Positions 4,419-28,711 of a stretch of DNA of 64,000 nucleotides are shown piece by piece. The notes below the pieces were generated by a model that searched no databases, was not told the origin of the DNA, and saw only the letters and a list, made by a program, of their open reading frames with translations. The DNA is taken from IMG/VR virus record IMGVR_UViG_3300044645_002359, positions 124,001-188,000 of that record; one strand, written 5' to 3'. Position 1 is the first letter of the stretch. Each line of letters starts with the position of its first letter. The translations under genes were made by a program, and so were the position numbers.

Positions 4419-5960
4419 TTGTCAAACAGATTTAAAACGGCTCCTGTGCCGACTGGGGAGATCTCAAGTTATACGAGCGACCCTTATAATTTATCCAGTA
4501 TTTACATGTTCGGGAGTTCTTCTCCCTTTACAGGATCTGGAAATAGCATAGTTCGGCCTAGCGACGACCTTTTAATCCAAAAGGGTGGAAATCGAGCACT
4601 TTCGGTTTACCAGAGACTCTTCTTTGACGAGCACGTACAAAGTTCTTTTTCTAAGCTGGTTCAAGAAGTTGTATCAAGACCCTGGTATGTTGAAGAGTAT
4701 AGCTCAAAACCGGGTGACATTGCAGTAAGAGACTTCGTAGCAGAGATTCTAGAAGAGCTGGCCTTGGATGAAATTTACAAAGGTTTGGCAGAAGCTCTGA
4801 TTGTAGGGTACAGTGTTGGAGAAGTAATGTGGAAAAAGACCAAGAGGGGGGTTATACCTTTCGACATTAGAATGAGAGACCAGCGCCGCTTCGTTTTCCA
4901 AGAATCGGAGGATTCTCAAAATGGCTTCACGATGCGCTGCTTAACCTTCAACCGGATGTTTGAGGGTGTCGAATTGCCCGCCAGAAAATTTGTGGTAAAT
5001 AGATACTGGTCTCAGCACAATGGTGACCCTTACGGTTCTTCTCTAGGCAGGGTGCTTTACCCGTTGGTTAAGTTTAGACGACGCGCTATAGAATCCTATG
5101 TCCTTTACGGTGACCGTTACGCCACTCCTACCGTTGTTGCTACGGCACCCTTAAGCGCATCTTCCGCAGAAATTGATACAATCTACAACCACATCTCTAA
5201 CTTATCACAAGAAACAGCTCTTGTTTTACCAGAGGGGTACAAGTTAGACTTTATAAATCCGAGCGGAAGCCCGGACGTTTTTAAAAGCTTGATTGACTAC
5301 ATTGATAAGGAAATCAGTTTGATACTTTGCGGAGAAAATGAAGCCGGACAAGCCGAGGCAGGTTCAAGAGCTTCTTCCCAAGTTGCCAATGTTGTAAGAG
5401 TAGTGAAAGCGGCCGAGATTTCTGAAGCTGTCTCCCATACTTTGACAAGAACCTTGGTAAGGTGGATCGTAGACCTTAACTTCGGAATCGACGTTGCGGC
5501 TCCAAGTCTCACAAGAGAGTTCAGAATTGAAGAATCTCCCGTCACAGCTAGTGACCTCTCAGTTCTCATACAATCGGGCTTCAAACCCCGAAGAGAGTGG
5601 GTGGAAAGGCACTTCAGAATTGAGCTTGAGTCTGAAGCTCCAAACTTTGAAACTAAAGGGGAAGAAGACAACACTACTTACAATCCCGACGAAGACACTG
5701 ATCTTTACAATTCAATTTTCGGTGGGGATTACGAATCAGAAGAGTCCGAGTCTACTGGTTCAACCACTAAACAAACTTCTGAGGAACCGCTACCGGAAGC
5801 CGAACCAGAAGAAACTTCCGGGGAATTAGTAGCAGAGGAAGCTCCTGAGGGTTACGATTCAATTTTTGAAGGGGGAGACGAATCAGAAGAGTCTTCCGCA
5901 GATCAACTTGTGGAAGAATTTATTAAGACCAAAACAAGGAAGAAAAGCAAAAAAGGGTAA
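4419..5960 (+). CDS. Portal protein (Mu gp29/DUF935-like) with acidic C-terminal tail
   Basis: ALIVGYSVGEVMW, DPYGSSL, YIDKEISLILCGE, LVRWIVDLNFG motifs; position upstream of protease gene. Confidence 0.88.
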   Translation: MSNRFKTAPVPTGEISSYTSDPYNLSSIYMFGSSSPFTGSGNSIVRPSDDLLIQKGGNRALSVYQRLFFDEHVQSSFSKLVQEVVSRPWYVEEYSSKPGDIAVRDFVAEILEELALDEIYKGLAEALIVGYSVGEVMWKKTKRGVIPFDIRMRDQRRFVFQESEDSQNGFTMRCLTFNRMFEGVELPARKFVVNRYWSQHNGDPYGSSLGRVLYPLVKFRRRAIESYVLYGDRYATPTVVATAPLSASSAEIDTIYNHISNLSQETALVLPEGYKLDFINPSGSPDVFKSLIDYIDKEISLILCGENEAGQAEAGSRASSQVANVVRVVKAAEISEAVSHTLTRTLVRWIVDLNFGIDVAAPSLTREFRIEESPVTASDLSVLIQSGFKPRREWVERHFRIELESEAPNFETKGEEDNTTYNPDEDTDLYNSIFGGDYESEESESTGSTTKQTSEEPLPEAEPEETSGELVAEEAPEGYDSIFEGGDESEESSADQLVEEFIKTKTRKKSKKG

Positions 5961-5969
5961 AAAACGTAT

Positions 5970-8546
5970 ATGAGTACAACAAGTAGTAAAGTGTTTACAA
6001 AACGTGTTCATGTTTTCACGGCGGGGCCTCAGATTTCCGCTCAGGGGGTAGAAAGAGATTTCACCCCCGATGACCTTCAACAAGTTGTTGAATCTTACGA
6101 TCCTCAAACTCATGAGGCTCCCTTAGTAATAGGGCACTCTGGAGACAATGACAGCGTACCTTCTTTCGGGTGGGTTAAAAAATTGGTTCGGAGCGGAGAG
6201 AAATTATACGCCGATGTCGATTTTACAGACACTGCTAAAGATTTGGTGAAGGACGGTCATTATCGCAAAGTTTCGATCTCTTTCTATTCCCCGAACTCCC
6301 CAATCAACCCACATGAAGGGAAGTGGAGTGTTAGACACTTAGCGCTTCTAGGTGCCTCTCCCCCCGCTGTTAAGGGTTTAGAACCTTTTTCATTCTCCGA
6401 AGACAAGGACGGAGTTTTCAACTTCGCTTCCGTTCTTTCACCCAGCGAGATCTTCGATGAAGAACTCGGCCCAACCCTTCTTGTTGAGCGAAGCCCTTTA
6501 GAAATTCTGAAGGAAAAGCTCGAAGAAGTTCGGGGGGACATGAAGTCTTCTTTGAATGATCTTCAAGAAAACCAGGAGCAACAAACAGAAACAGACGTCG
6601 ATGAGACGCGAAACAACACCTCGGCGGATGAAAGCACCGCCCCCGAAAACCCTAACCAGCAATTTTCCGAAATGAAAAAGAAAATGGGGCGTGAAGGAGC
6701 CGAAGTCTCCGAGTCCGCTCAAAAACTCGCAAACATGGAAGATCAGTTTCCAGAAGAAAAATTTGATGAAGGTGTTTCCCGTAAAGTTACAAAGGGAGCA
6801 CATGGCCAAGAAGTCCAAGTTGTGGAAGAAGTCTTTGAAGAAGACGACGAACTTTCCGACGAACATGGTGAACTTCCGGCTGCCTTCAAGAAAAACATGG
6901 CTAAAATGAAAGCCAAGGCTAAGCATAAGGCCCATGAAAATATGGATGATGAGGAAGAGGATGTTTCCGAAGACCACCGAGAACTCCCTGCTGCTTTAAG
7001 AGCAAATGCATCCAAAATGAAGGCTAAAGCTAAGCATAAGGCCCATGATGAAGACATGGACGAAGATGAAGAAGAAGGCGATTTCGCTGAAGTCAGTGAC
7101 AAAACTGCTTCTGGTGGTAAAGCCAGTTTCGGTAAGCACGCTCAGAAAGACTCTGAAGACCCTGCGGGAAGAGCAAAGACCGCTCGCTCCTCTGACGACA
7201 GCTACGGCGACCGTCAGTCGGTTGGTCACGGCGATGAAGAAGATCGTGAAGGCGTCACTTCTGATGACGAGCAAGACCTTGACAGAGTGAACACTGCTAA
7301 GAACGGTGATCAGGATGAAGATCGCAAGAAACTTGCCAAAGTTGCTGAAGGTGAAGGTGACGAAGACTCTCGTTGGGCAGACCAACCAGAAGGTCGCCGC
7401 CGTGCGATGGAAGACGATCAGTACAACGACGGCGAATACGGTCTTCCTCGCCCCAACAAGCCCGGAATTTCTGACGGTACTGACCCACACGGTCGTGACG
7501 GTGGTCCTACTCCCGTTTCTGAAAAGTCTGAGGAAGAACCCGATTCCGAAGATATCGTAGTTCCTCTTCAAAGCACCAAAGGAAACAAGGTTTCCCGTGT
7601 ACTTCATCAAACCTCCGGACAAAAAAGAGCTCCTTTGAAAGGTGGAGAGATCGCAGACCACAGCGAAGAATCTGATGGTGTTACCCGAACTGCTAAAAAG
7701 GCAGGTGTTTCCGCAGGCAATGACCCCCACGGTCGTGATGATGGCCCAACGAACTTCCCATCTCGTTCTGAAGAAGAGCCCGATGATCTGGAAATGGCTG
7801 TGGATCTGGAGAATGCTACTCAGAGCAATAAAGTTCGTATACTTCGTCAAAAGTCCGGAGACCAGCCTTCTCTTGACCACGCCGAAGACGACGACCTTGA
7901 TGTAGAAGAGTGCGAAGCTACTGGCAAAATGACACGCAAGTACGCTGAGCGTGACACTATGACCCGCACAGGAAAGGGTTCTACCTACGGGCAAAAGCGT
8001 TCGTTTATGGACGAGGAGGATGCTGAAGACGAGGATGACGATTATTCAGAAACCGATGACTTCTGCGGAATGGGCTCAATGGGGCAGGCCAAACCCATGG
8101 GTTACCCTGTTCAAATGTTCGAAGAGTTCCAGCGTGAACTAGAGAACCTTAAGAACGAAAATTCTCGTCTCAAGAAAGAGTACCAAGAGCAACAAACTCG
8201 CTCACGCAAACAACGCATCGCCGAGTTCGTAGATAACCTCTACACCGAAGGAAAGTTGACTGATGGGATTATTCCTCAGAGAGATCTTCAAAATTACTGC
8301 GAAGGTCTTGAGTTCGGGACCCTTGAGTTCGCTGAAGGCGAATCTCCAACAACCAAGTTGTTTGGACTTCTTGATCGCTTACCTAACCTGGTCTACTTCG
8401 GAGAAGTTGTCGCTGATGGTCGCTTCGAAGCTCCCGAAGATGAGGACCTTGACCCCCACGCCCGTGCCATGAAAATGGTTGAGTCCGGAGAGTGTGATTA
8501 CGTTGAAGCCATTAAGCGTTGCATTCCTTGGGGTGGAAGAGGCTGA
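5970..8546 (+). CDS. Mu gpI-like prohead protease fused to a long acidic scaffold region
   Basis: HEAPLVIGH, FGWVKKL, YRKVSISFY, RHLALLGASPPAVKGL protease motifs; C-terminal coiled coil; internal repeats. Confidence 0.88.
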   Translation: MSTTSSKVFTKRVHVFTAGPQISAQGVERDFTPDDLQQVVESYDPQTHEAPLVIGHSGDNDSVPSFGWVKKLVRSGEKLYADVDFTDTAKDLVKDGHYRKVSISFYSPNSPINPHEGKWSVRHLALLGASPPAVKGLEPFSFSEDKDGVFNFASVLSPSEIFDEELGPTLLVERSPLEILKEKLEEVRGDMKSSLNDLQENQEQQTETDVDETRNNTSADESTAPENPNQQFSEMKKKMGREGAEVSESAQKLANMEDQFPEEKFDEGVSRKVTKGAHGQEVQVVEEVFEEDDELSDEHGELPAAFKKNMAKMKAKAKHKAHENMDDEEEDVSEDHRELPAALRANASKMKAKAKHKAHDEDMDEDEEEGDFAEVSDKTASGGKASFGKHAQKDSEDPAGRAKTARSSDDSYGDRQSVGHGDEEDREGVTSDDEQDLDRVNTAKNGDQDEDRKKLAKVAEGEGDEDSRWADQPEGRRRAMEDDQYNDGEYGLPRPNKPGISDGTDPHGRDGGPTPVSEKSEEEPDSEDIVVPLQSTKGNKVSRVLHQTSGQKRAPLKGGEIADHSEESDGVTRTAKKAGVSAGNDPHGRDDGPTNFPSRSEEEPDDLEMAVDLENATQSNKVRILRQKSGDQPSLDHAEDDDLDVEECEATGKMTRKYAERDTMTRTGKGSTYGQKRSFMDEEDAEDEDDDYSETDDFCGMGSMGQAKPMGYPVQMFEEFQRELENLKNENSRLKKEYQEQQTRSRKQRIAEFVDNLYTEGKLTDGIIPQRDLQNYCEGLEFGTLEFAEGESPTTKLFGLLDRLPNLVYFGEVVADGRFEAPEDEDLDPHARAMKMVESGECDYVEAIKRCIPWGGRG

Positions 8547-9915: not shown

Positions 9916-9976
9916 CACTAAGTTTACTTGAAGTCCCATTTAACTAAAATATAGTTAATAAATCAGTATCAGGGAA

Positions 9977-10795
9977 ATGGGTTACCGAAAGAACCTTTTT
10001 ATGGGGGCCTACATGAGACTTATGCGTAAGGGCAGAGGTAGAGGATTACTTACTAAAGGGGAGCAGGGGGTAATGCACAAACACCACATATTTCCTAAGT
10101 CTATTTTCAAGAACAAAAGGACCGTAAACAAGAAGATCGTAGGGTTAACTCCCAAGGAACACTTCCAGGCCCACCACCTGCTCTACCGTGCTTTTATCGA
10201 TAGGTATGGAACTAACCACTGTAGAACAATAAAAATGGGTCATGCCATATCTAAAATGGCCACCAAGCACGGGAAACAAGGGGTTAGGAACATATTATCG
10301 TTAAAACAGTTTGAAGAAGCGGTGAATATGCAAAGGGTCTCCATGAGAGCCCGTTACTCTGACGAAAAGGAACGGGAGAAAACTTCCTTGAAGGCTAAAG
10401 AAAGAATGGCTAGAGAAGGAGAACGGGAGAAGATATCTGAATCTCTGAAAGAATACTTTAAAGACCCTAAGCAAAGGGAGAAGCAAAAATATAACACTCT
10501 GGGAAAAAAGTGGTATAATAACGGTGAGACCCAAACCTTGTCTTGGTGTTGTCCCGGAGAGGAATGGGTGAAAGGAAGACTATCGAATGGTATAACTGGA
10601 ACATATTGGTGTAACAATGGATTTGAAAACTTAAAAGTGAGGAAAGGTAACGAACCCCCTCAGGGATTTTCATCGGGTAGACTTATGAATCTTGGGAAGT
10701 TCTACAATGACGGTAAGAAACAAATAAGAGTTGCAGAAGGTTGTAAGGTTCCCTTAGGCTTCTCTCCTGGGCGACTCAAGAGAAATAGGGTATAA
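9977..10795 (+). CDS. Free-standing HNH homing endonuclease
   Basis: HKHHIFPKS...LTPKEHFQAHHLL HNH module; three C-terminal KWYNNG/YWCNNG/KFYNDG repeats. Confidence 0.8.
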   Translation: MGYRKNLFMGAYMRLMRKGRGRGLLTKGEQGVMHKHHIFPKSIFKNKRTVNKKIVGLTPKEHFQAHHLLYRAFIDRYGTNHCRTIKMGHAISKMATKHGKQGVRNILSLKQFEEAVNMQRVSMRARYSDEKEREKTSLKAKERMAREGEREKISESLKEYFKDPKQREKQKYNTLGKKWYNNGETQTLSWCCPGEEWVKGRLSNGITGTYWCNNGFENLKVRKGNEPPQGFSSGRLMNLGKFYNDGKKQIRVAEGCKVPLGFSPGRLKRNRV

Positions 10796-10878
10796 CTCTA
10801 TTGGTTGCGACATCACGCTCACAACCAGATTGCTAAGGCAATCTTTGAAGTCAACTTTACACAAAGGAAACATCTATT

Positions 10879-13800
10879 ATGATGAATCTTCAACAGACCT
10901 ACGCCGGGGTCGATCCTATCTTGACCACGTTGGCGCAGGGCTTCATGCTCCCTTTGGTGTAGGGGAAAAGAAATTGGGTGAACTGCGGGAAAGCCTACTT
11001 TTGTTCAACGAAAGGGTCAATCCGCAGCCAAGCTTCCGGTACACCGGGAGAAGGTTCAGAGACTACCTGAGAGATATAGTTCTCTTAATAACAGGCTAGA
11101 GCGCCCAACGTTTTGTAAAGAAACGATAAGATAGTCCGACACTCTGTGTAAACAGAGAGAACATACTGTCCACCAACATCGCGAATCGATAAGGTTCCCT
11201 TCAGAGGCAACTCTGATTGAAAATCGGGTGAATTGCTGGGATACCTGACGGTTTCAGAATCTACTTTTCTGGAACACAAGGCAATCAGCAGCCAAGTTTA
11301 CTTTGGGCATCTATTGGCTACAATAGAGATAAGTAAGAAGGTTCAACGACTAGAAAGTGATCAACCCAGAAATAATCTTTCCACGAGCGCCCGACTCTCC
11401 CTTACATTACCAACGGTATGTAAAGCTTATAAACTCCCGCCCCTCTAGAGGTTTGATAAAAGAGATTGGTTTCCACATCCACCACATAGTGCCTAAGTGC
11501 ATGAAGGGTGGGAACGCTAAAGCCAATTTAGTTAAACTCACCTACAGAGAGCATTATCTATCCCATTGCTTGTTAGCTTTAGCTTTCAGTTCCGTGAAGA
11601 AACTGGGTAAAGCTATAAACTCTTTCAAAAAGTCTTCAAAGAACTCTCGGGTTTACGAAAAGGTGGCTCACCATGAGCACTCCGAAGAAACTAAAGTCAA
11701 AATTAGCAAATCCAACAAAGGAAAAGCTAGACCCCGTAAAGTTCCAATGTCTGACGAAGAGAGAACTGCTCGCGCAGAACGATGTAAAAATAGGGTTTGG
11801 AGTGAAGAGTCAAAACAAAAACTTAGAGACAAAGCCTTAAGTAATCCTACTATCCAGTTTGCAATACAAGCAGCTAATAGCCCAGATAGAGATCGAACGG
11901 GAGTTAATAACCCCCGAGCAGATAAAGAAGTTTGGGCCAACTTAGGGGTCTTGCATAGAGCCTGGACAGAAAACGGAAAGTGTGGTGCCAGAAAGCTCCA
12001 CAGGCTAACAAAATTAGGTAATACTTGGCAATCTCTAAAAACCGTTGTTAAAAAGTTTAAGGAAGATGATGATATAGTCTGAACTTACAGGAAACTGTAA
12101 GAAGTGAGTGATAAACTCTCTCACGGTAACAAGTGTTTATCGCACCTGTTGTTGACACCCCTACCAGAGCTGGGAGAATTCTCAGATTTGGTAAGGAACA
12201 ATTTGCTATAAACGACTTCCGTCGTGCTTATGGTACAAACATTCCCTACGTTCAGAGCCGTTACGACTCTGAGCCCTACGCTCTTGAACAAGAAGTTGTG
12301 GCTTGGGAATTGCCTGAAGAAGTCGAACTGGCTTCCGCCGCTTGAGAGAGCGGTTGAAAAACTGGGTGAATTGCCTGGAACCCTAACTGCGTCAGCGTCG
12401 CACAAGGGAATCAGCAGCCAAGTTTACTACGTCGAGAAATCACTATGATTCCTGTAGTAAAAAGGTTCAACGACTAGACGATGAGTTTCGACAACAATAA
12501 CTCGTCCACGAGTGCCCAGCACCCTAACAAATGGTTGAAATGGTACTACACTCTATGCGCCTCCCGAAAACACAGGGGCGTATCCAAGGAAAAGGGTTAC
12601 CACGTACATCACATTATTCCAGAATGTGACGGTGGTGACAACTCCAAAGAAAACAGAGTGAAATTAACAAACCGAGAACACTTTATCGCTCATGTCCTCC
12701 TTGCAAAAGGAACTAACTCAGTCAAACACTGGTACACAGTTAGAAGGATGTTGGGAGTGAAAGGTGGGAAAGGCGCAGTTACCTACCAACCTCGTCTATC
12801 TATTCTATCTACTTCTCTTCAAAAGACTGCTTTTGAAATTGCCCCTGGAGCTGCGCAAAAGGGAAAACCAAAGTCGGAACAAATGCGTTCAAGACTAAGT
12901 CGGACCAAGAAAGGCAAACCTCTACCTCCTGAAACCGTACGAAAAGCACACGAAGCTGTTCGAGGCAGAGTTCAAACAGAAGAGGAAAAGCAAAGGCGAA
13001 GTGAGTCTGCAAAGGCTTACTGGGCCGAGAAAAGAATGAAAGACAAGGGTGAAGATATAGTCTGACCTCCTCTAAAGAGAGAGAAGTGAGGGATAAAGAG
13101 CCCCCACGATAACACAAGTGCATCGAGAACGCTGGTGAAGGCCCTGCACAAGTAGACCTCCGCGCTTTCGAAACCCGTAACGCAATGTCCAGACTGATGA
13201 ACTCATACGAGTACACAGTTTCTCAGGCCGTTACCGTTACCGGTTCCTACAACCCATATGAACCCTGGGATACAACCCCCGGTTCACAAACTGGCCTTGG
13301 TTTTACAACCTGGACCAACTTCAACACCGCTTATGGCACCGCAACCGGCCCCGCCGCATGGTCCGCTCTCTCTGCTAACCCCATTGAGGACATTCTGACC
13401 CTGAAGCGTGCTGTTGCCAACCAGATCGGCATCCGTCCGAACTCCGCTGTTCTTGGAACCGCTGTTTTCGACCTCTTGCTGACCAACCAAGCGATCCTTG
13501 AGCGTATCAAGTATACCTCACCCGACAGCATCGATACAGATGTCATCGCTCGCTACTTCGGTCTTGAGCGTGGCCTGCGCGTAGCCGAAGGTCGTTATTT
13601 GGCCGCAGACGGTACCTTGCAACCGGTATTCCCAAGCAACGGTATCCTTCTGTTCTACAGCCCCAACGGCCCCTCTGATTCAATCATGCCTGCCGGTGGC
13701 GCTAATGCTGCGACTCCTGCGTTTAGCTACACATACCAGTTGACTGGCACACCCGCTGTCCGTCCTGAGTACTACATTCGCGAACGCCGCGTTGTACGTG

Positions 13801-13895
13801 CTGAAATCTCAATCGAACGTGTGGTTAACCTAGTTGGCCTCGGTGCAACTGGTCTTATTGGTTCTGGCGCTATGATCACCGACATCCTGTCCTGA
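10879..13895 (+). CDS. Major capsid protein, spliced: join(10879..10953,11169..11186,12136..12323,13121..13895), 351 aa
   Basis: Exons join in frame to MMNLQQTYAGVDPILTTLAQGFMLP|STNIAN|FIAPVVDTPTRAGRILRFGKE...ELPEEV|IENAGEGPAQVDLRAFETRNAMSRL...; VDPILT, GIRPN and YTYQL motifs typical of this MCP family; AAGGA RBS. Confidence 0.9.
10954..11168 (+). ncRNA. Group I intron 1 in MCP (215 nt, no ORF)
   Basis: 5' exon ends in U (TCCCT pairs with GGGGA, U.G wobble); core GGTGAACTGCGGGAA / AATCCGCAGCCAAG / GTTCAGAGACTA / AAGATAGTCC; terminal G; P10 TTGGTG pairs with exon 2 CACCAA. Confidence 0.9.
11187..12135 (+). mobile_element. Group I intron 2 in MCP (949 nt) carrying an HNH endonuclease
   Basis: P1 GAAT/GTTC; core GGTGAATTGCTGGGA / AATCAGCAGCCAAG / GTTCAACGACTAG / GATATAGTCTG; ends AACAAGTG; P10 CGATAA pairs with exon 3 TTATCG. 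Confidence 0.9.
11357..12082 (+). CDS. Intron-encoded HNH homing endonuclease with NUMOD3-like motif
   Basis: HIHHIVPKCMKGGNAKANLVKLTYREHYLSH; HSEETKVKISKSNKGK; stop lies in intron S element (GATATAGTCTGA); start uncertain. Confidence 0.85.
   Translation: MINPEIIFPRAPDSPLHYQRYVKLINSRPSRGLIKEIGFHIHHIVPKCMKGGNAKANLVKLTYREHYLSHCLLALAFSSVKKLGKAINSFKKSSKNSRVYEKVAHHEHSEETKVKISKSNKGKARPRKVPMSDEERTARAERCKNRVWSEESKQKLRDKALSNPTIQFAIQAANSPDRDRTGVNNPRADKEVWANLGVLHRAWTENGKCGARKLHRLTKLGNTWQSLKTVVKKFKEDDDIV
12324..13120 (+). mobile_element. Group I intron 3 in MCP (797 nt) carrying an HNH endonuclease
   Basis: P1 GAAGT/GCTTC with U.G; core GGTGAATTGCCTGGAA / AATCAGCAGCCAAG / GTTCAACGACTAG / AAGATATAGTCTG; ends ACAAGTG; splits Val codon GT|C and restores frame. 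Confidence 0.9.
12481..13065 (+). CDS. Intron-encoded HNH homing endonuclease with NUMOD3-like repeats
   Basis: HVHHIIPECDGGDNSKENRVKLTNREHFIAH; KGKPKSEQMRSRLS repeats; ends DIV* in S element. Confidence 0.85.
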   Translation: MSFDNNNSSTSAQHPNKWLKWYYTLCASRKHRGVSKEKGYHVHHIIPECDGGDNSKENRVKLTNREHFIAHVLLAKGTNSVKHWYTVRRMLGVKGGKGAVTYQPRLSILSTSLQKTAFEIAPGAAQKGKPKSEQMRSRLSRTKKGKPLPPETVRKAHEAVRGRVQTEEEKQRRSESAKAYWAEKRMKDKGEDIV

Positions 13896-13922
13896 TTAGG
13901 AAGGAAATAAAGAGGTGACACC

Positions 13923-14366
13923 ATGGCAATTCTCAGACCGATTACAAAGGCCCAGTACGAAGTTTCCTTCGTAGCCCCTGACGGCCCCACCCTAATCGCC
14001 ACGTTTACAAAATTCAGCGGAATCAAAGATTCCTCCGATAGTAGTGATTATGCCAATGGTACAGGTAACCGTATTTATCACGTTGTAGGCCCCAGAAAGG
14101 CAGACAACATCACTCTAACCGCACCGTACGATCCCACGATCTTCAAGCAGTTGGAAATTTACTGGTTGCAGTACAATTGTAGAGAAATCACAGTTACTAT
14201 CACTCCAAAAGATTGTGTTGGAAACGGCTCAGCTGCGGCTGGCGGCCAATACACCTGTTACGGATGTCAATTCATGTCTATCAATACTGCTGACGTTGAC
14301 CGTGAAAGCGGCAACGTTCAAGAGATTGAAGTCCAGTTGACAGTGAACTCTTGGGATAGAACCTGA
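13923..14366 (+). CDS. Tail tube protein
   Basis: FTKFSGI...DNITLT...YTCYGCQFMSINTADVDRESGNVQEIEVQLTV, gp19-like tube pattern; 147 aa; GAGG RBS. Confidence 0.75.
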   Translation: MAILRPITKAQYEVSFVAPDGPTLIATFTKFSGIKDSSDSSDYANGTGNRIYHVVGPRKADNITLTAPYDPTIFKQLEIYWLQYNCREITVTITPKDCVGNGSAAAGGQYTCYGCQFMSINTADVDRESGNVQEIEVQLTVNSWDRT

Positions 14367-14943: not shown

Positions 14944-17766
14944 ATGCCACGTTATTCACCACTACCGTCCGTTTCGATAGACCCCCGAAGTGAAGCAGAT
15001 TTGGTTCAAGCTGCTGCCCAAACCGTCTACGAAGCCTCTAACAAAACTTTAAATGATTTCAGTGCAGGCAACCCTCTGGCAGTTCTTTTAGAGGGGCAGG
15101 CTTTCGCACAGGGAGAATTTTTGTATTGGGCCAATCAGCTACCAGACAAGATCCTGATTGAGTGGATAGGACCCTTTTTGGGGGCGATGAGAAGGCTGGG
15201 GACCACTTCCACAGCCGAGCTGGTTGTAACAATTCCCCCAACCGGGAGTTCTACAGTAATTCCCTCAGGAACGATTTTTTCCACTAACCCTCAACTTACA
15301 TCTGGAGAAAGTTACGAATTCATATCAAATTTAGACCTGGTTATACCTTCGGGAGAGGCGACTGGAAGAGTTCCAGTGTATTCAAGGTTCGTTGGAAGCA
15401 TATATAATGTTCCTTCAAATTCAATTACAGGGGTTGCTAATACAGGTGCTCTCAATCTTTCGGCAACCAACCCTCAGCCGTCTGTTGGAGGTAGCGACGT
15501 AGAAACTTTCCAAGAAGTACAGGAAAGATTTTTCACCCTTATCCGTAGAAGAAACCCTGTCAGTGAGTCCGATTGGCAAGACTTTTTCATTGATTTGTAC
15601 GGGATTGGAACTTTAACTTCGGTTCAACCGAATCGTTCAAATTTTTACGGCTACAACTACACCCAAGATTACACTCTCCCTAATGGACAAGTCTCTTTCT
15701 TCGTGTTGGGTCCCAACGGTCAAGAATTAACCACGCAACAATTGTCCTTGGGTCAAAATGCGGTGAACTTTTCCGTACCCGTTGAAAACCAAGGACATTT
15801 ATTCCCAATCACCTTGAGTCAAGTACAATACAACTTGACTGTTGAGGTTAACTCAAATGGATCGTTCGGCTCAAACTTCAAAGACAGTTCTCTAAATTTT
15901 CGCGATAAACTTTTCTCAGTATTGACACCGGGTCAGACTTTTCCAGCCGACATCACACCGACAGTAAGTGATATCGACGCCGCTTTTTACTCTACTTTTG
16001 ATGCGAATACTAGATTTAGAGACCCCTCAATAACAGAGTCTTTAGCGTATAATACTCCAAATTCCCTGAGTAAAGAAGCAGCGGTTTATACGAACGTCTA
16101 TGATTTCACACCCTCAAGTAGTATCTTGAAGCAGAATGACCTTATTGTTGTAAACACCCCCAACCCAACTTTTTACCCAGTAGAGGCTGATTTCACACCT
16201 TATTCTTCCAATAAGTACGATCAGACCGTTTATGGTAATCTTTCCTTAAAGCAGATAAAACCCTTGACGTCAGGATCTTACCTCCTTGGCGACATTGTGT
16301 ATTACGACGGTGCTGGGGACCCGGCTGAACAAGGACTTCATGTTGTCTTAGAAAACCTCAACATAGCTTCTTCTTCGGACGTTTTGTCTTCTATAGCAAG
16401 CGGAAAAGTGTCTGGGGTTAAAACTTTTTCACCCTGGGTTGTAGGCAACTCTTATGTTTACTCCTCGGGAGGAACCATAGACCCTGAGATAGTAGAGTAC
16501 AATTACTCTTCGGGAGAATTTGTGCCTCTGACTCCTTCTTCTGTTCCCTTAAACAGTCGCCCAGGAGGGTTCGCCTGGCTGGTTTCACAGAACTTCACTC
16601 TCAACCCTTCCACGAATGATATAACTGGGGCCCAGACCGAGGTTTTAATCGGATCCTATATTACCCCTCAACAACTAGAGCCTAATTCGTCCTACACCTC
16701 TGGCATATGGGTTTGCACTCCCCAAATAGGCGGTGGACCATCACAAGTTGTAGATCCGTACTACAACTATGTAGATCTGACCAAAGGGGCCATAGTGAAA
16801 TATGCTTATGTTGAAGCTAATTTCACCTACACCCCTAACGAATTGACCGTTAGCGAGTACTTCAACCTCCTAGTTGATCAAGGAGTGCTGTCGGAAATTC
16901 TAGTATTTGAAGGGGATGGCGGTTTGCCTATCTACAAGTACAAAGCTCGGTTTAAAGCGGGTCAATACTTGCTGTACAAAGAATCCGCGTCCTCTCTACC
17001 CACTTACTACATATCTTCCTTATTTTTCACACCAGATAGCACGAACATACAGGACTTACTAGGGAATGGCTCAGTCTACAATTTGGCGCCGACCCCTGCT
17101 CTTCAAGCGCAACTGAACTCTGATTTGGCGGGCTCTTCTCTGAAAAATTTCGATCGGATGTTCACTTTTTTCCTTGGAGACCGCACTTTTTTCCGGGAAG
17201 GCTCAAATGTACAGTCTTACACTGCAACTTCTGCAGTTACACCCTTATTTGACTTTAACATTTATTTGAACAATGGAATTTTCGTTGAGTCCGAATCTTT
17301 AGGGCAAGCTCTACCTTTAGCTAATGGCTATATCCCGTTTTTTAATCCCGTTTACCTTAACACCACTGAAGACACAATTTTAAGCGAGGACGGAAGAAAT
17401 TACTACAGAGTCATGAAAGCTTTCACACCTTCTACAACGGTGACAAACTGGACTGGAATGGTGACAAACAACACGTCTAGGTACGAAGAATTCGCGGGCA
17501 ATTTACTACGTTTTGTAGTCTCCTACCGGTGCGAAGAACCTGTTCTTTCCCAGTACGGATTGGAGACTTCTTCAATTAAACTTGGATCTTGTCAGATAAC
17601 CATCATACCCAGAAACACTGGCAGGAACTTTAGTTCCTCACCGAACTTAGTCTACGTCTGGGAGAATGCCTCAACCTTGAGCGAAGTACCCGATCTTTCC
17701 TGGTATACAGGAACCACTTTTGAATATAGCCCACCCAACTACGGTGAAGGAACGTTGGCCCTATGA
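14944..17766 (+). CDS. Baseplate J-like (wedge) protein with long C-terminal extension
   Basis: IDPRSEADLV, NDFSAGNPLAVLLE, TNPQPSVGGSDVET...RRRNPVSESDW baseplate-J motifs. Confidence 0.82.
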   Translation: MPRYSPLPSVSIDPRSEADLVQAAAQTVYEASNKTLNDFSAGNPLAVLLEGQAFAQGEFLYWANQLPDKILIEWIGPFLGAMRRLGTTSTAELVVTIPPTGSSTVIPSGTIFSTNPQLTSGESYEFISNLDLVIPSGEATGRVPVYSRFVGSIYNVPSNSITGVANTGALNLSATNPQPSVGGSDVETFQEVQERFFTLIRRRNPVSESDWQDFFIDLYGIGTLTSVQPNRSNFYGYNYTQDYTLPNGQVSFFVLGPNGQELTTQQLSLGQNAVNFSVPVENQGHLFPITLSQVQYNLTVEVNSNGSFGSNFKDSSLNFRDKLFSVLTPGQTFPADITPTVSDIDAAFYSTFDANTRFRDPSITESLAYNTPNSLSKEAAVYTNVYDFTPSSSILKQNDLIVVNTPNPTFYPVEADFTPYSSNKYDQTVYGNLSLKQIKPLTSGSYLLGDIVYYDGAGDPAEQGLHVVLENLNIASSSDVLSSIASGKVSGVKTFSPWVVGNSYVYSSGGTIDPEIVEYNYSSGEFVPLTPSSVPLNSRPGGFAWLVSQNFTLNPSTNDITGAQTEVLIGSYITPQQLEPNSSYTSGIWVCTPQIGGGPSQVVDPYYNYVDLTKGAIVKYAYVEANFTYTPNELTVSEYFNLLVDQGVLSEILVFEGDGGLPIYKYKARFKAGQYLLYKESASSLPTYYISSLFFTPDSTNIQDLLGNGSVYNLAPTPALQAQLNSDLAGSSLKNFDRMFTFFLGDRTFFREGSNVQSYTATSAVTPLFDFNIYLNNGIFVESESLGQALPLANGYIPFFNPVYLNTTEDTILSEDGRNYYRVMKAFTPSTTVTNWTGMVTNNTSRYEEFAGNLLRFVVSYRCEEPVLSQYGLETSSIKLGSCQITIIPRNTGRNFSSSPNLVYVWENASTLSEVPDLSWYTGTTFEYSPPNYGEGTLAL

Positions 17767-26947: not shown

Positions 26948-28711
26948 ATGACCTTTCAACACCCCTCTATAACACATGCTTCTCAACTTGACGAAAAGTC
27001 ACGGTGGAGAAAGTATAAAAGAGGGATTCGAGAACTTGAGCTTCTTGAGGCCCCTAAATCCGTAATTCAAGAATTTAAGTACAAAGCAGCGAGAGATTGT
27101 TTCCTAGCCTTCTGCGACATCATGAAAAACGGGGACTTAAAAGTTGCCCCATTTCATGAAATCATAGCCAGCGCTTTTGAAGATCTTTTTGAACGAAGGT
27201 ACAGACGTCTCATTATATCGTGCCCTCCGCGTTCGGGGAAATCTATGCTTTCTACGATGTTTTTAGCGTGGCTGTTGGGTAAGGACGAAAGGACTCAGCA
27301 TATCTTGGCTTCTTACGGTGCCACGCTGTCTCAAAAATTCCACAGAGAAGCTGTGGTAATGATGAAAACCCCTTCCTATAAAAAGATCTTTCCTGAATTT
27401 TCTGGATTCAACCGGGATTCTAAATATGACTTAATAGGAGGTGGCTACATACTTGCGACTTCTGTGGGGGGTATTCTCACAGGTTTCACTTCTGGGACAA
27501 TTGATATGGACTCAGTAGGTATTGGAGCGGCTTTGATCGACGATCCACTAAAGTCTTCGGATTCGAAAGCAGCCCTAGACAACTTAGAAAGTTGGTGGGC
27601 AGAGCAAATGTCTACTAGAAGAACAAACCACTACGCTCAAGTTATCATTGCAACTCGCTTCCATGAGAAAGACCTTCACGGGGTGTTACTTGATGGGGAT
27701 GGACTCTATGACCCTGGGGAGAACCCGTTCGGATGGAGATGGATCAACATCGCAGGACTTTGTGAGGACCCTGAAAACGACCCTCTAGGTAGACAACTTG
27801 GAGAGAGCCATTGGCCGGAAAATTCTGCCTTCTCTGTGCCTATGCTTGAGTCCCAGAAAAAGATCATGGGCAGCTTTAAGTTTGCCGCTCTATACCAAGG
27901 AGTCCCTGTAGCTTCCGAAGGGCAGATCGTAAAAAGCAGCTGGGTTGAGATCATTGAAGAGGAAGAATGCCCCGACCTGGATGTTGTATGGTTCGGAGTT
28001 GACTGTGCCTTTTCAGAAAGGGAGATGGCTGACGAAAGTGCGATCTGCGTGGCTGGGATAAGTACTCGGACACCGGACATTGTTTACATTCGAGACATTG
28101 TGAAAGGTAAATGGGGCTTTCCGGACTTAATTGAGTCAGTGAAGCAACAGTACGCCTATTACAAAGCGAAAGTTCTTTGCATTGAAAAAGCAGCGTCGGG
28201 GCACTCTCTCATTCAAATGCTAAAGAGGGAAGCCAGGATCCCAATCGAAGAAATGCGTCCCTTAAAGTCGAAAACCACTCGCCTTCAGGCAGTCTGCCCT
28301 TTACTTGAGAACAGCCGCGTTAAACTAGTAAGGGGTCTATGGACCGATGCGTTCGTAAAAGAGTTGACCTCTTTCCCCTACGTAAGGCACGAAGACAGTC
28401 TCGACGCGATGGTCTGGGCGCTGACCTACTACTCTCTCAAACTTGATACCATCGACAGAGGGATTCAAGAGTCAATCGTTCAAAACCGAAAGTGGAGTGG
28501 CGATCTTCGCAGAGCCGCTTTTAGTGACGGCGCTTCTTACGGAAACCTGTTTGAGGATAAGGGCAGTGCCCTTGGCGGGCGTAGAATGCCTGGCGACGGT
28601 AGTTTAAACGACCCTGACTTTCAGTCTGCTAACACTCCGGATCAAGGTCTCTTCAGGGGCGGCAGGAGCAGAAACCTTCGCAGTGGGTCTGGATACAACC
28701 TTTGGAATTGA
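26948..28711 (+). CDS. Terminase large subunit
   Basis: Walker A PPRSGKS, Walker B LIDDP, ATRFHEKDL, ALYQGVP, nuclease GVDCAF...DESA, IEKAASG, HEDSLDA. Confidence 0.93.
   Translation: MTFQHPSITHASQLDEKSRWRKYKRGIRELELLEAPKSVIQEFKYKAARDCFLAFCDIMKNGDLKVAPFHEIIASAFEDLFERRYRRLIISCPPRSGKSMLSTMFLAWLLGKDERTQHILASYGATLSQKFHREAVVMMKTPSYKKIFPEFSGFNRDSKYDLIGGGYILATSVGGILTGFTSGTIDMDSVGIGAALIDDPLKSSDSKAALDNLESWWAEQMSTRRTNHYAQVIIATRFHEKDLHGVLLDGDGLYDPGENPFGWRWINIAGLCEDPENDPLGRQLGESHWPENSAFSVPMLESQKKIMGSFKFAALYQGVPVASEGQIVKSSWVEIIEEEECPDLDVVWFGVDCAFSEREMADESAICVAGISTRTPDIVYIRDIVKGKWGFPDLIESVKQQYAYYKAKVLCIEKAASGHSLIQMLKREARIPIEEMRPLKSKTTRLQAVCPLLENSRVKLVRGLWTDAFVKELTSFPYVRHEDSLDAMVWALTYYSLKLDTIDRGIQESIVQNRKWSGDLRRAAFSDGASYGNLFEDKGSALGGRRMPGDGSLNDPDFQSANTPDQGLFRGGRSRNLRSGSGYNLWN

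Follow-up and report, generated by a model that had tools for sequence, protein, structure and literature searches.

Background

Group I introns in phage genomes have been found mostly in genes of nucleotide and DNA metabolism (PMC11878797), but interrupted virion genes are also known. [quoted passage not shown] The introns bordering that exon are near-identical subgroup IA2 copies that skip it. Major capsid genes can also be invaded, as seen in mycobacteriophage LittleE and, as cited there, in lactococcal phage Tuc2009, where a single group I-type intron with a homing endonuclease was found by comparison with intronless relatives, with U before the splice site and G at the intron end. The LittleE enzyme is listed as a LAGLIDADG type (supplement of PMC11878797). 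In cyanophages, group I introns are known from psbA (S-PM2, S-RSM88, S-SRM01, S-CBWM1), and the S-CBWM1 psbA intron is reported to carry an endonuclease (PMC8557907). Group I introns and HNH genes have heavily colonised the Bastillevirinae and the gut 'Jug' jumbo phages, where the targets are replication and packaging genes spread over the genome. Finally, tandem group I introns separated by exons too short to offer normal P1 and P10 partners have been described in organellar cox1 genes of eukaryotes, such as the placozoan gene with a 1-nt exon (PMC5436844).

Here we analyze a 64-kb window (positions 124,001 to 188,000 of IMG/VR record IMGVR_UViG_3300044645_002359), in which the major capsid gene of a large tailed phage, probably a cyanophage related to S-CBWM1, is interrupted by three group I introns whose splicing is inferred from sequence. 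As opposed to Twort orf142, the short exon measures 18 nt and lies between introns of two divergent families, and two of the three introns carry HNH genes. LittleE and Tuc2009 have one capsid intron each, whereas this locus has three and belongs to a clade-wide hotspot of 15 insertion sites. In contrast to the Bastillevirinae and the 'Jug' phages, all three introns found in the window sit in one structural gene. In the literature searched, we found no report of comparable intron density, or of 5-18-nt exons, in a phage or bacterial protein-coding gene.

Organization of the interrupted capsid gene

The features of the locus are listed in Table 1. The original prediction of a 351-aa capsid protein encoded by four exons, one of them an 18-nt microexon, is confirmed at every coordinate. 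The Rfam group I intron model (RF00028) yields three hits with full model coverage (1-253) against a gathering score of 50, and these are the only matches in the window even at E<=0.01. The four exons sum to 1056 nt and give a protein with a terminal stop and no internal stop, which aligns without gaps at the junctions to the uninterrupted capsid proteins of Synechococcus phages S-CBWM1 (234/341 identical, 69%) and S-TIM5 and to 59 intronless metagenomic alleles; about 65 uninterrupted metagenomic alleles match it at about 90% identity. The gene follows the portal and protease genes. A spliced aligner supplied only with the intronless coding sequence of one relative (locus L005; L numbers designate loci of related metagenomic alleles) and the rule that exons end in U and introns in G returned exactly the predicted exons. 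Global spliced alignments on four truncated loci gave spurious low-identity exons and were ignored. A megablast search of 10800-13950 against isolated phage genomes gave no match, a search of eight neighbouring proteins against NCBIfam returned nothing and no tRNA was found.

Table 1. Features of the interrupted capsid gene (coordinates refer to the 64-kb window)
Feature	Coordinates	Strand	Length	Characteristics	Support
Capsid exon 1	10879-10953	+	75 nt	aa 1-25, MMNLQQTYAGVDPILTTLAQGFMLP; ends in U (T10953)	Aligns to aa 1-25 of the S-CBWM1 and S-TIM5 capsid proteins
Intron 1	10954-11168	+	215 nt	No ORF; ribozyme family A; P1: exon UCCCU with guide GGGGA (10962-10966), 5 bp, U10953.G10962; P10: 10954-10959 with exon-2 nt 3-8, 6 bp; in-frame stop 3 codons in; terminal G11168	RF00028 at 10862-11158, 65.8 bits, E 1.8e-14; 94% identical copy at the same site in L009/L082/L169
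Capsid exon 2	11169-11186	+	18 nt	Microexon STNIAN; ends in U (T11186); nt 1 and 3-8 pair with intron 1 (P10), nt 13/15-18 with intron 2 (P1)	Same exon between the same two introns in L082 and L169
Intron 2	11187-12135	+	949 nt	Ribozyme family B; P1: exon GAAU with guide GUUC (11194-11197), 4 contiguous bp, or 6 of 7 in the Rfam alignment, U11186.G11194; P10: 11187-11193 with 12136-12142, 7 bp including one G.U; P4 strands near 11226-11241 and 11283-11293; P7 strands 11340-11353 and 12071-12079; terminal G12135	RF00028 at 11177-12101, 56.2 bits, E 1.4e-11; same-site copies in L007 (89%) and L082 (85%)
HNH/NUMOD3 homing-endonuclease ORF	11357-12082	+	241 aa	In the P8 loop of intron 2; starts (GTG) just after the P7 5' strand, stop codon just after the P7 3' strand	phrog_655 E 5e-31; Pfam NUMOD3 25.7 bits (cutoff 20.4); 81% and 64% identical at the same site in L082 and L007
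Capsid exon 3	12136-12323	+	188 nt	aa 32 to the first two bases of codon 94; ends in U (T12323)	phrog_1005 (major head protein) positions 33-93, E 6e-7
Intron 3	12324-13120	+	797 nt	Ribozyme family B; phase 2; P1: exon GAAGU with guide GCUUC (12331-12335), 5 bp, U12323.G12331; weak P10 (3 bp); terminal G13120	RF00028 at 12320-13083, 70.0 bits, E 1e-15; same-site copy in L008 (86-90%)
HNH homing-endonuclease ORF	12481-13065	+	194 aa	In the P8 loop of intron 3; starts (ATG) just after the P7 5' strand, ends ...GEDIV-stop over the P7 3' strand	phrog_655 E 5e-27; Pfam HNH 18.5 bits (below the 21.4 cutoff); 84% identical to the L008 copy, 32% to the intron-2 enzyme
Capsid exon 4	13121-13895	+	775 nt including stop	Last base of codon 94 to aa 351	Pfam Phage_cap_E (PF03864) 32.7 bits (cutoff 22.9); phrog_1005 positions 100-304, E 1e-29; 63% identical to the S-CBWM1 capsid protein over 257 aa

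Each intron possesses a guide sequence complementary to its own 5' exon, with the U.G pair at the splice site, and these guide sequences are specific to their sites. In all 17 site variants examined, the own exon pairs over at least 4 bp (mean 5.4), whereas exons of other sites tested at the same position pair over a mean of 1.8 bp. At the insertion site of intron 3 (site 3), exon and guide sequence change together, with GAAGU/GCUUC here versus GAGGU/GCCUC in L082/L148. The U preceding the splice site appears to be linked to the intron, since it is T in every intron-bearing allele but, among 59 intronless alleles, in only 3 at site 1 and 1 at site 2. Nevertheless, five intronless alleles of a more distant lineage also have CCT|TCC at site 1, and this flank is thus not exclusive to intron carriers. 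For introns 2 and 3, analyzed with 32 relatives, 14 of 26 predicted pairs in P3, P4, P6 and a P7.1-like helix show compensatory double changes, and almost none are broken. A hairpin between P7 and P3' would suggest an IA-like subgroup, although this assignment rests only on our own reading of the sequence.

The Pfam HNH score of the intron-3 enzyme falls below the curated cutoff. Residues H42, N57 and H66 are invariant in seven homologues. A search of the intron-2 enzyme against PDB found nothing, and a seven-sequence profile detected only the HNH motifs of IscB, Cas8f-HNH and McrA at E 0.03-0.1; neither enzyme matches a solved structure beyond the HNH motif. Intron 1, on the other hand, resembles cyanophage psbA introns. 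It is 84% identical over 81 nt to the psbA intron of S-PM2 and S-RSM88, and 78% identical over 137 nt to a region beside the split psbA of S-SRM01. The capsid gene of S-CBWM1, the closest isolate by capsid protein, is itself uninterrupted.

The public JGI gene calls on the source contig list a 70-aa ORF and a 236-aa capsid fragment and miss exons 1 and 2. The original prediction that automated annotation would miss the N-terminal part of the protein is therefore also correct, and capsid-based phage surveys and phylogenies would mis-measure this clade.

Distribution and mobility of the introns

Every intron is present in some alleles and absent in others, precisely at the junctions defined here. 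L007 has only intron 2 and L008 only intron 3, while L009 has intron 1 but neither intron 2 nor intron 3. L009 and L169 differ at 4 of 1056 exon bases and yet by three whole introns. Such a presence/absence series among near-identical strains provides population-level material on how mobile introns spread, hitch-hike and jump, and bears on whether their nucleases act in competition between phages. Exons 1-3 are 100% identical in protein to those of L008 but only 85% in DNA, pointing to selection on the exons. The original prediction regarded three introns in a capsid gene as unusual, and this holds against the literature but not within this phage clade, in which sister alleles carry 6 to 12 introns in the same gene.

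The presence of HNH genes in introns 2 and 3 suggests a route of spread. Cleavage of intronless alleles during co-infection would copy the intron, together with some flanking exon, into them. Intron 1 encodes no enzyme and lies 18 nt from intron 2, and hence it probably travels within the co-conversion tract of intron 2. Indirect support for homing comes from the enzymes, which are 64-84% identical at the same site but 23-34% identical between different sites, and from a tract resembling co-conversion: the window and L004 share an identical intron-2 3' end, and the next 67 exon bases differ at 2 positions, against 102 of 896 further on.

Interpretation and alternatives

We interpret the locus, with high confidence, as a single capsid gene transcribed into one pre-mRNA. 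Each intron would fold into the standard group I core, pair its guide sequence with the last 4-6 nt of its own 5' exon and be removed by two guanosine-initiated transesterifications ending at its terminal G, with ligation restoring the 351-aa reading frame. Splicing remains an inference in the absence of RNA or protein evidence, and scans of IMG/VR and the JGI metagenome collection for the doubly spliced exon 1-2-3 junction with the flanks of this allele found nothing; a shorter pattern found only intronless alleles of a 75%-identical lineage. An intein or protein-splicing reading is rejected because each insertion has in-frame stops 2-7 codons in and a ribozyme core, and so is a single composite intron or a twintron, since exons 2 and 3 are conserved coding sequence and each intron occurs alone in some relative. 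The capsid protein is usually among the most highly expressed phage proteins (PMC3706429), and three or more obligatory splicing events in its mRNA imply very efficient ribozymes or a tolerated cost.

The sequence is a metagenome assembly, and an assembler could have stitched together co-occurring strains that each carry one intron. Intron content does vary between near-identical strains, several contigs break inside these introns (L004, L082 and a second sample), and L069 looks like a collapse or recombinant of similar introns that deletes aa 4-31. We nonetheless consider a chimera very unlikely, given that the adjacency of intron 1, the 18-nt exon and intron 2 recurs in L082 and L169 from other samples, that an 18-nt exon is shorter than the usual assembly k-mers, so both flanks must have been read on one molecule, and that the 51-72% identity among the three introns gives little scope for repeat-induced misjoining. 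It seems equally improbable that the gene is a pseudogene, or that some of its introns no longer splice, in a defective or helper-dependent phage. The weak P10 of intron 3, the short P1 of intron 2, the failure to find a spliced junction in public contigs and the lack of a terminal G at the colinear position in the site-2 intron of one heavily invaded relative (L148) could be taken in this sense, and not every copy in the clade need be functional. However, all four exons keep an intact frame, with complete protein conservation over aa 1-94, the ribozyme cores score above the Rfam threshold, the guide sequences still match their exons, and both endonuclease ORFs and the neighbouring structural genes are intact.

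A further possibility, which we deem unlikely, is that the introns are genuine but not autonomous, either because efficient removal needs a phage or host RNA chaperone or maturase, or because the 18-nt exon forces introns 1 and 2 to splice one after the other, with exon skipping as a by-product. Half of the tested Bastillevirinae introns spliced only in infected cells (PMC11878797), short exons between tandem group I introns give exon skipping in Twort orf142 (23 nt) and Coxiella 23S rRNA (34 nt) (PMC10136302), and two folded ribozymes must here dock on helices 4 nt apart. The original prediction proposed that splicing order may be constrained because exon 2 supplies both the P10 partner of intron 1 and the P1 partner of intron 2. 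Exon 2 does supply both, but the two pairings use different nucleotides and can form at once. Base-pair competition therefore forces no order, and any constraint would be steric. Moreover, introns 1 and 2 belong to different ribozyme families (51-60% identity) with different guide sequences, and engineering both the ribozyme core and the splice-site recognition elements has been found to suppress exon skipping (PMC10136302), so this arrangement may favour exon inclusion. How tandem ribozymes share P1 and P10 partners and avoid skipping has so far been studied mainly with engineered constructs (PMC10136302), and the short exons of this locus and its relatives (5-39 nt) could provide a natural test series.

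Intron density in the capsid gene family

The allele in the window is a modest one. In this phage clade the capsid gene has at least 15 group I insertion sites, 13 of them in the first 356 nt. One complete allele has 6 introns, with exons of 9, 27, 39, 18, 225, 577 and 161 nt, and another has 12 insertions, with exons of 5, 8 and 10 nt. We tentatively suggest that this may be the most intron-dense protein-coding gene known in a virus of bacteria, and that its introns multiply inside the gene. They seem to jump to new sites offering the same short exon pairing, as the site after ATGATGAAU and site 2 share exon GAAU and guide sequence GUUC and harbour introns that are 85-90% identical, and they also seem to swap structural modules with one another. 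In this scenario, their HNH nucleases may serve as weapons against intronless co-infecting relatives, as shown for the PhiPA3 intron.

Organization of the interrupted capsid gene

The interrupted gene lies in a phage head-and-tail module, together with genes for a portal protein, a head protease, a baseplate wedge/J-like protein and the large terminase. The Rfam group I intron model (RF00028) matches three places on the + strand, all of them within the capsid gene, with scores above the gathering score of 50 bits and E-values ranging from 1.4e-11 to 1e-15. A permissive rescan of all 64 kb at E<=0.01 recovers only these three matches, and the introns are therefore confined to this one gene. The coordinates of these and other features are compiled in the table below.

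Features of the interrupted capsid gene, its surroundings and related loci (window coordinates unless a locus is named)
Feature	Coordinates	Strand	Remarks
Portal gene	4419-5960
Head protease gene	5970-8546
Free-standing HNH endonuclease gene	9977-10795		272 aa; insertion roughly 9920-10830
Conserved motif, hairpin and leader upstream of the capsid start codon	10786-10878; L069:680-790
Interrupted capsid gene	10879-13895
Capsid exon 1	10879-10953
'Alpha' insertion site, no intron in the window	10885-10888		CDS nt 7-10
Capsid exon 2	11169-11186		18 nt
Capsid exon 3	12136-12323
Capsid exon 4	13121-13895
RF00028 match, intron 1	10862-11158	+	65.8 bits
RF00028 match, intron 2	11177-12101	+	56.2 bits
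RF00028 match, intron 3	12320-13083	+	70.0 bits
Guide sequence, intron 1	10962-10966		GGGGA
Guide sequence, intron 2	11194-11197		GUUC
P10 strand, intron 2	11187-11193		CGAUAAG
Guide sequence, intron 3	12331-12335		GCUUC
Regions in which the intron endonuclease ORFs overlap the ribozyme core	11340-11400 and 12071-12082; 12465-12520 and 13054-13065
Baseplate wedge/J-like gene	14944-17766
Large terminase gene	26948-28711
Capsid gene of relative L148 (IMGVR_UViG_3300044846_005229)	about 70-5450 of L148	-	11 RF00028 hits
Capsid gene of relative L169	L169:286-4263		six introns
Chimeric intron of relative L069	L069:790-1740

The four exons put forward in the original prediction total 1056 nt and translate into 351 aa with a single terminal stop. 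Exon 4 matches Pfam Phage_cap_E (32.7 bits, cutoff 22.9) and PHROG 1005 (major head protein) at positions 100-304, and exon 3 matches the same PHROG at positions 33-93. The closest isolated phage is Synechococcus phage S-CBWM1, whose annotated major capsid gene is uninterrupted. The spliced product aligns to the S-CBWM1 protein at 234/341 identities and to the S-TIM5 capsid protein at 133/326, without a gap at any junction (FMLP/STNIAN/FIAP here, against YMLP SNNISN FIAP in S-CBWM1). The window is part of IMG/VR contig 3300044645_002359 (201 kb) and, of the 80 closest capsid loci in IMG/VR, about 65 carry an uninterrupted gene that is about 90% identical over residues 1-351. To place the boundaries independently, we wrote a spliced aligner that knows only the CDS of an intronless relative (L005) and the rule that exons end in T and introns, of at least 150 nt, end in G. 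This aligner returned exactly the same four exons. In addition, exons 1-3 are 100% identical in protein to those of another relative, L008, but only 85% identical in DNA, and the small exons are therefore under purifying selection.

The original prediction of a capsid gene split by three group I introns is thus confirmed as an observation and supported in its interpretation, with splicing itself and the activity of the endonucleases inferred from sequence. The automated gene calls of JGI on the source contig list a 70-aa ORF and a 236-aa capsid fragment, and omit exons 1-2. A second JGI sample (3300059473) carries an identical 236-aa C-terminal capsid fragment on a 27,771-bp contig that starts about 70 nt upstream of exon 4, inside where intron 3 would be. 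Hence, the same allele probably exists elsewhere, and assemblies tend to break in these introns.

Upstream of the capsid start codon, a conserved GGGTATAAC motif is followed by a conserved hairpin (GATTGCTAAGGCAATC) and leader, which may constitute a late promoter and a structured 5' leader. The free-standing HNH endonuclease gene (phrog_655, E 1e-16; 22-30% identical to the intron enzymes) sits in a ~910-nt insertion between the terminator-like hairpin of the upstream gene and the capsid 5' leader. L069 and L169, two further capsid loci, lack this insertion and have the two flanks about 58 nt apart.

Splice-site pairing and tests for selection on the ribozymes

The three introns end in G and pair a guide sequence with the end of their own 5' exon. 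In intron 1, exon UCCCU pairs with the guide sequence, while intron nt 1-6 (UUGGUG) pair with exon-2 nt 3-8 (CACCAA) and A10961 can pair with U11169. In intron 2, exon GAAU pairs with the guide sequence, an interaction that the Rfam alignment extends to 6 of 7 pairs, and the P10 strand pairs with UUUAUCG at the start of exon 3. In intron 3, exon GAAGU pairs with the guide sequence, but P10 is only 3 bp. Read-through from the exons meets a stop after 3, 2 and 7 codons, and exon GC is 0.53 against 0.42-0.46 in the introns.

Introns were collected from relatives to ask whether the ribozymes are under selection. Across 17 combinations of site and exon variant, the guide sequence of each intron pairs with its own exon over at least 4 bp (mean 5.4), whereas the exons of other sites placed at the same position pair over a mean of 1.8 bp. 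At site 3 the exon and the guide sequence change together, with GAAGU/GCUUC in the window and L008, and GAGGU/GCCUC in the relatives L082 and L148. We aligned 34 5' domains of what we term family B, including window introns 2 and 3. The consensus fold recovers P3, P4, P6 and a hairpin between P7 and P3', and 14 of 26 pairs show compensatory double changes, with hardly any broken. Two 3' hairpins also vary by matched changes. Intron 1 belongs to a different family (family A). It is 215 nt long, 51-60% identical to intron 2 and 94% identical to its same-site copies, and its nearest relatives in isolates are the psbA intron of S-PM2 and S-RSM88 and a region beside the split psbA of S-SRM01, which fits a cyanophage origin.

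Endonuclease genes and signs of mobility

Introns 2 and 3 carry ORFs of 241 and 194 aa, both of which match PHROG 655 (homing endonuclease) with E-values of 5e-31 and 5e-27. The first has a NUMOD3 motif and both keep the HNH residues, with H42, N57 and H66 invariant in seven homologues. Enzymes at the same site are 64-84% identical, while those at different sites are 23-34% identical, as expected for different targets. Each ORF sits in the P8 loop, but its start codon lies directly after the P7 5' strand, its first ~15 codons are encoded by the P7.1-like hairpin and the P3 3' strand, and its stop codon UGA directly follows the P7 3' strand AGUC (...GAUAUAGUC-UGA). The coding sequence and the ribozyme core therefore overlap at both ends, and translation of the enzyme and folding of the ribozyme would be mutually exclusive.

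Relatives show each intron to be present or absent. L007 has only intron 2, L008 only intron 3, and L009 has intron 1 but not 2 or 3. The spliced CDS of L009 (a locus of 2756 nt in all) and that of L169 differ at 4 of 1056 positions, and their shared introns differ at 0-2 positions. Nonetheless, L169 has three more introns (after nt 93, 318 and 895), which are removed in L009 exactly at the predicted junctions. This implies either very recent gain or loss, or that L009, from sample 3300012708, is a partly spliced RNA. The window and L004, another relative, share an identical intron-2 3' end. The next 67 exon bases differ at 2 positions and, further on, 102 of 896 differ, a pattern that looks like a co-conversion tract. 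Among 59 intronless alleles, the base before site 1 is T in 3 (mostly CCG) and that before site 2 is T in 1 (mostly AAC), whereas every carrier has T, the base needed for the U.G pair. It should be noted, however, that five intronless alleles of a 75%-identical lineage do have CCT/TCC at site 1. The window also has AAT/CTT at the alpha insertion site (after CDS nt 9) even though it has no intron there. Of the 59 intronless alleles, 55 have AAC, and the difference could be the footprint of a lost intron or of co-conversion.

Splicing order and comparison with known systems

It had been suggested in the original prediction that the 18-nt exon may constrain the order of splicing. The P10 of intron 1 uses exon-2 nt 1 and 3-8, and the P1 of intron 2 uses nt 13/15-18. 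The two do not compete for bases, and either order yields a normal substrate for the other intron, although a steric limit is possible. Published cases of short exons between tandem group I introns, namely Twort orf142 (23 nt) and Coxiella 23S rRNA (34 nt), show exon skipping, and engineering work found that changing both the ribozyme core and the splice-site recognition elements suppressed it (PMC10136302). Here the 18-nt exon is flanked by introns of two different families with different guide sequences, and we infer that this may favour inclusion.

Group I introns in phage genes are classical and lie mostly in nucleotide and DNA metabolism genes (PMC11878797). Capsid genes with one intron are documented in LittleE, verified by RT-PCR and protein sequencing, and in Tuc2009, cited in the same paper (PMC3706429). 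Three introns in one structural gene are documented for Twort orf142, now considered the tail tube gene (PMC11878797). Intron-rich phage clades are also known, with about 18 introns per genome in Jug phages and up to three in Bastillevirinae polymerase and terminase genes (PMC12880540, PMC11878797), and micro-exons between group I introns are known in mitochondria (PMC5436844). The mechanism is a known one, and what is unusual is the arrangement, a multiply split capsid gene with an 18-nt exon. Within the literature collection searched, we found no report of a phage capsid gene with three or more group I introns, nor of the intron density of this clade, and the relatives make the arrangement more interesting than the window alone suggests.

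Intron density in related capsid genes

A scan of IMG/VR with a core motif of family B found more alleles of the same capsid gene. Spliced alignment gives 15 insertion sites in this gene family, after CDS nt 9, 36, 41, 75, 93, 150, 160, 192, 273, 281, 303, 318, 356, 895 and 927. The N-terminal third, where 13 of the 15 sites lie, is also the most conserved part of the protein. L169 is a complete gene with six introns and exons of 9, 27, 39, 18, 225, 577 and 161 nt, which together give an intact 351-aa frame with U and G at every boundary. Its first exon is just AUGAUGAAU, so that a ribosome starting there would cover the P1 of the first intron. L148, from a 279-kb contig, has 12 insertions by alignment, and its exons include 5 nt (CCCAU), 8 nt (GAAGAGGU) and 10 nt (AAGGAACAGU). 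Its site-2 intron lacks a terminal G at the colinear position and may be decayed. L172, from another sample, shares the 5-nt exon.

The intron after ATGAUGAAU (nt 9) and the site-2 intron share exon GAAU and guide sequence GUUC and are 85-90% identical, suggesting a jump between sites that offer the same pairing. Family B introns are, moreover, mosaics, in which a few alternative versions of P2, P5, P6 and the P7.1-like hairpin occur in different combinations at different sites. The intron after nt 303 in L082, for instance, has the 5' part of intron 3 of the window and the 3' part of the site-3 intron of L082. In L069, a single chimeric intron starts like the intron after ATGATGAAT and ends like the site-2 intron, with an internal module from a third intron. 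Capsid residues 4-31 are thereby deleted, through either recombination between similar introns or an assembly collapse.
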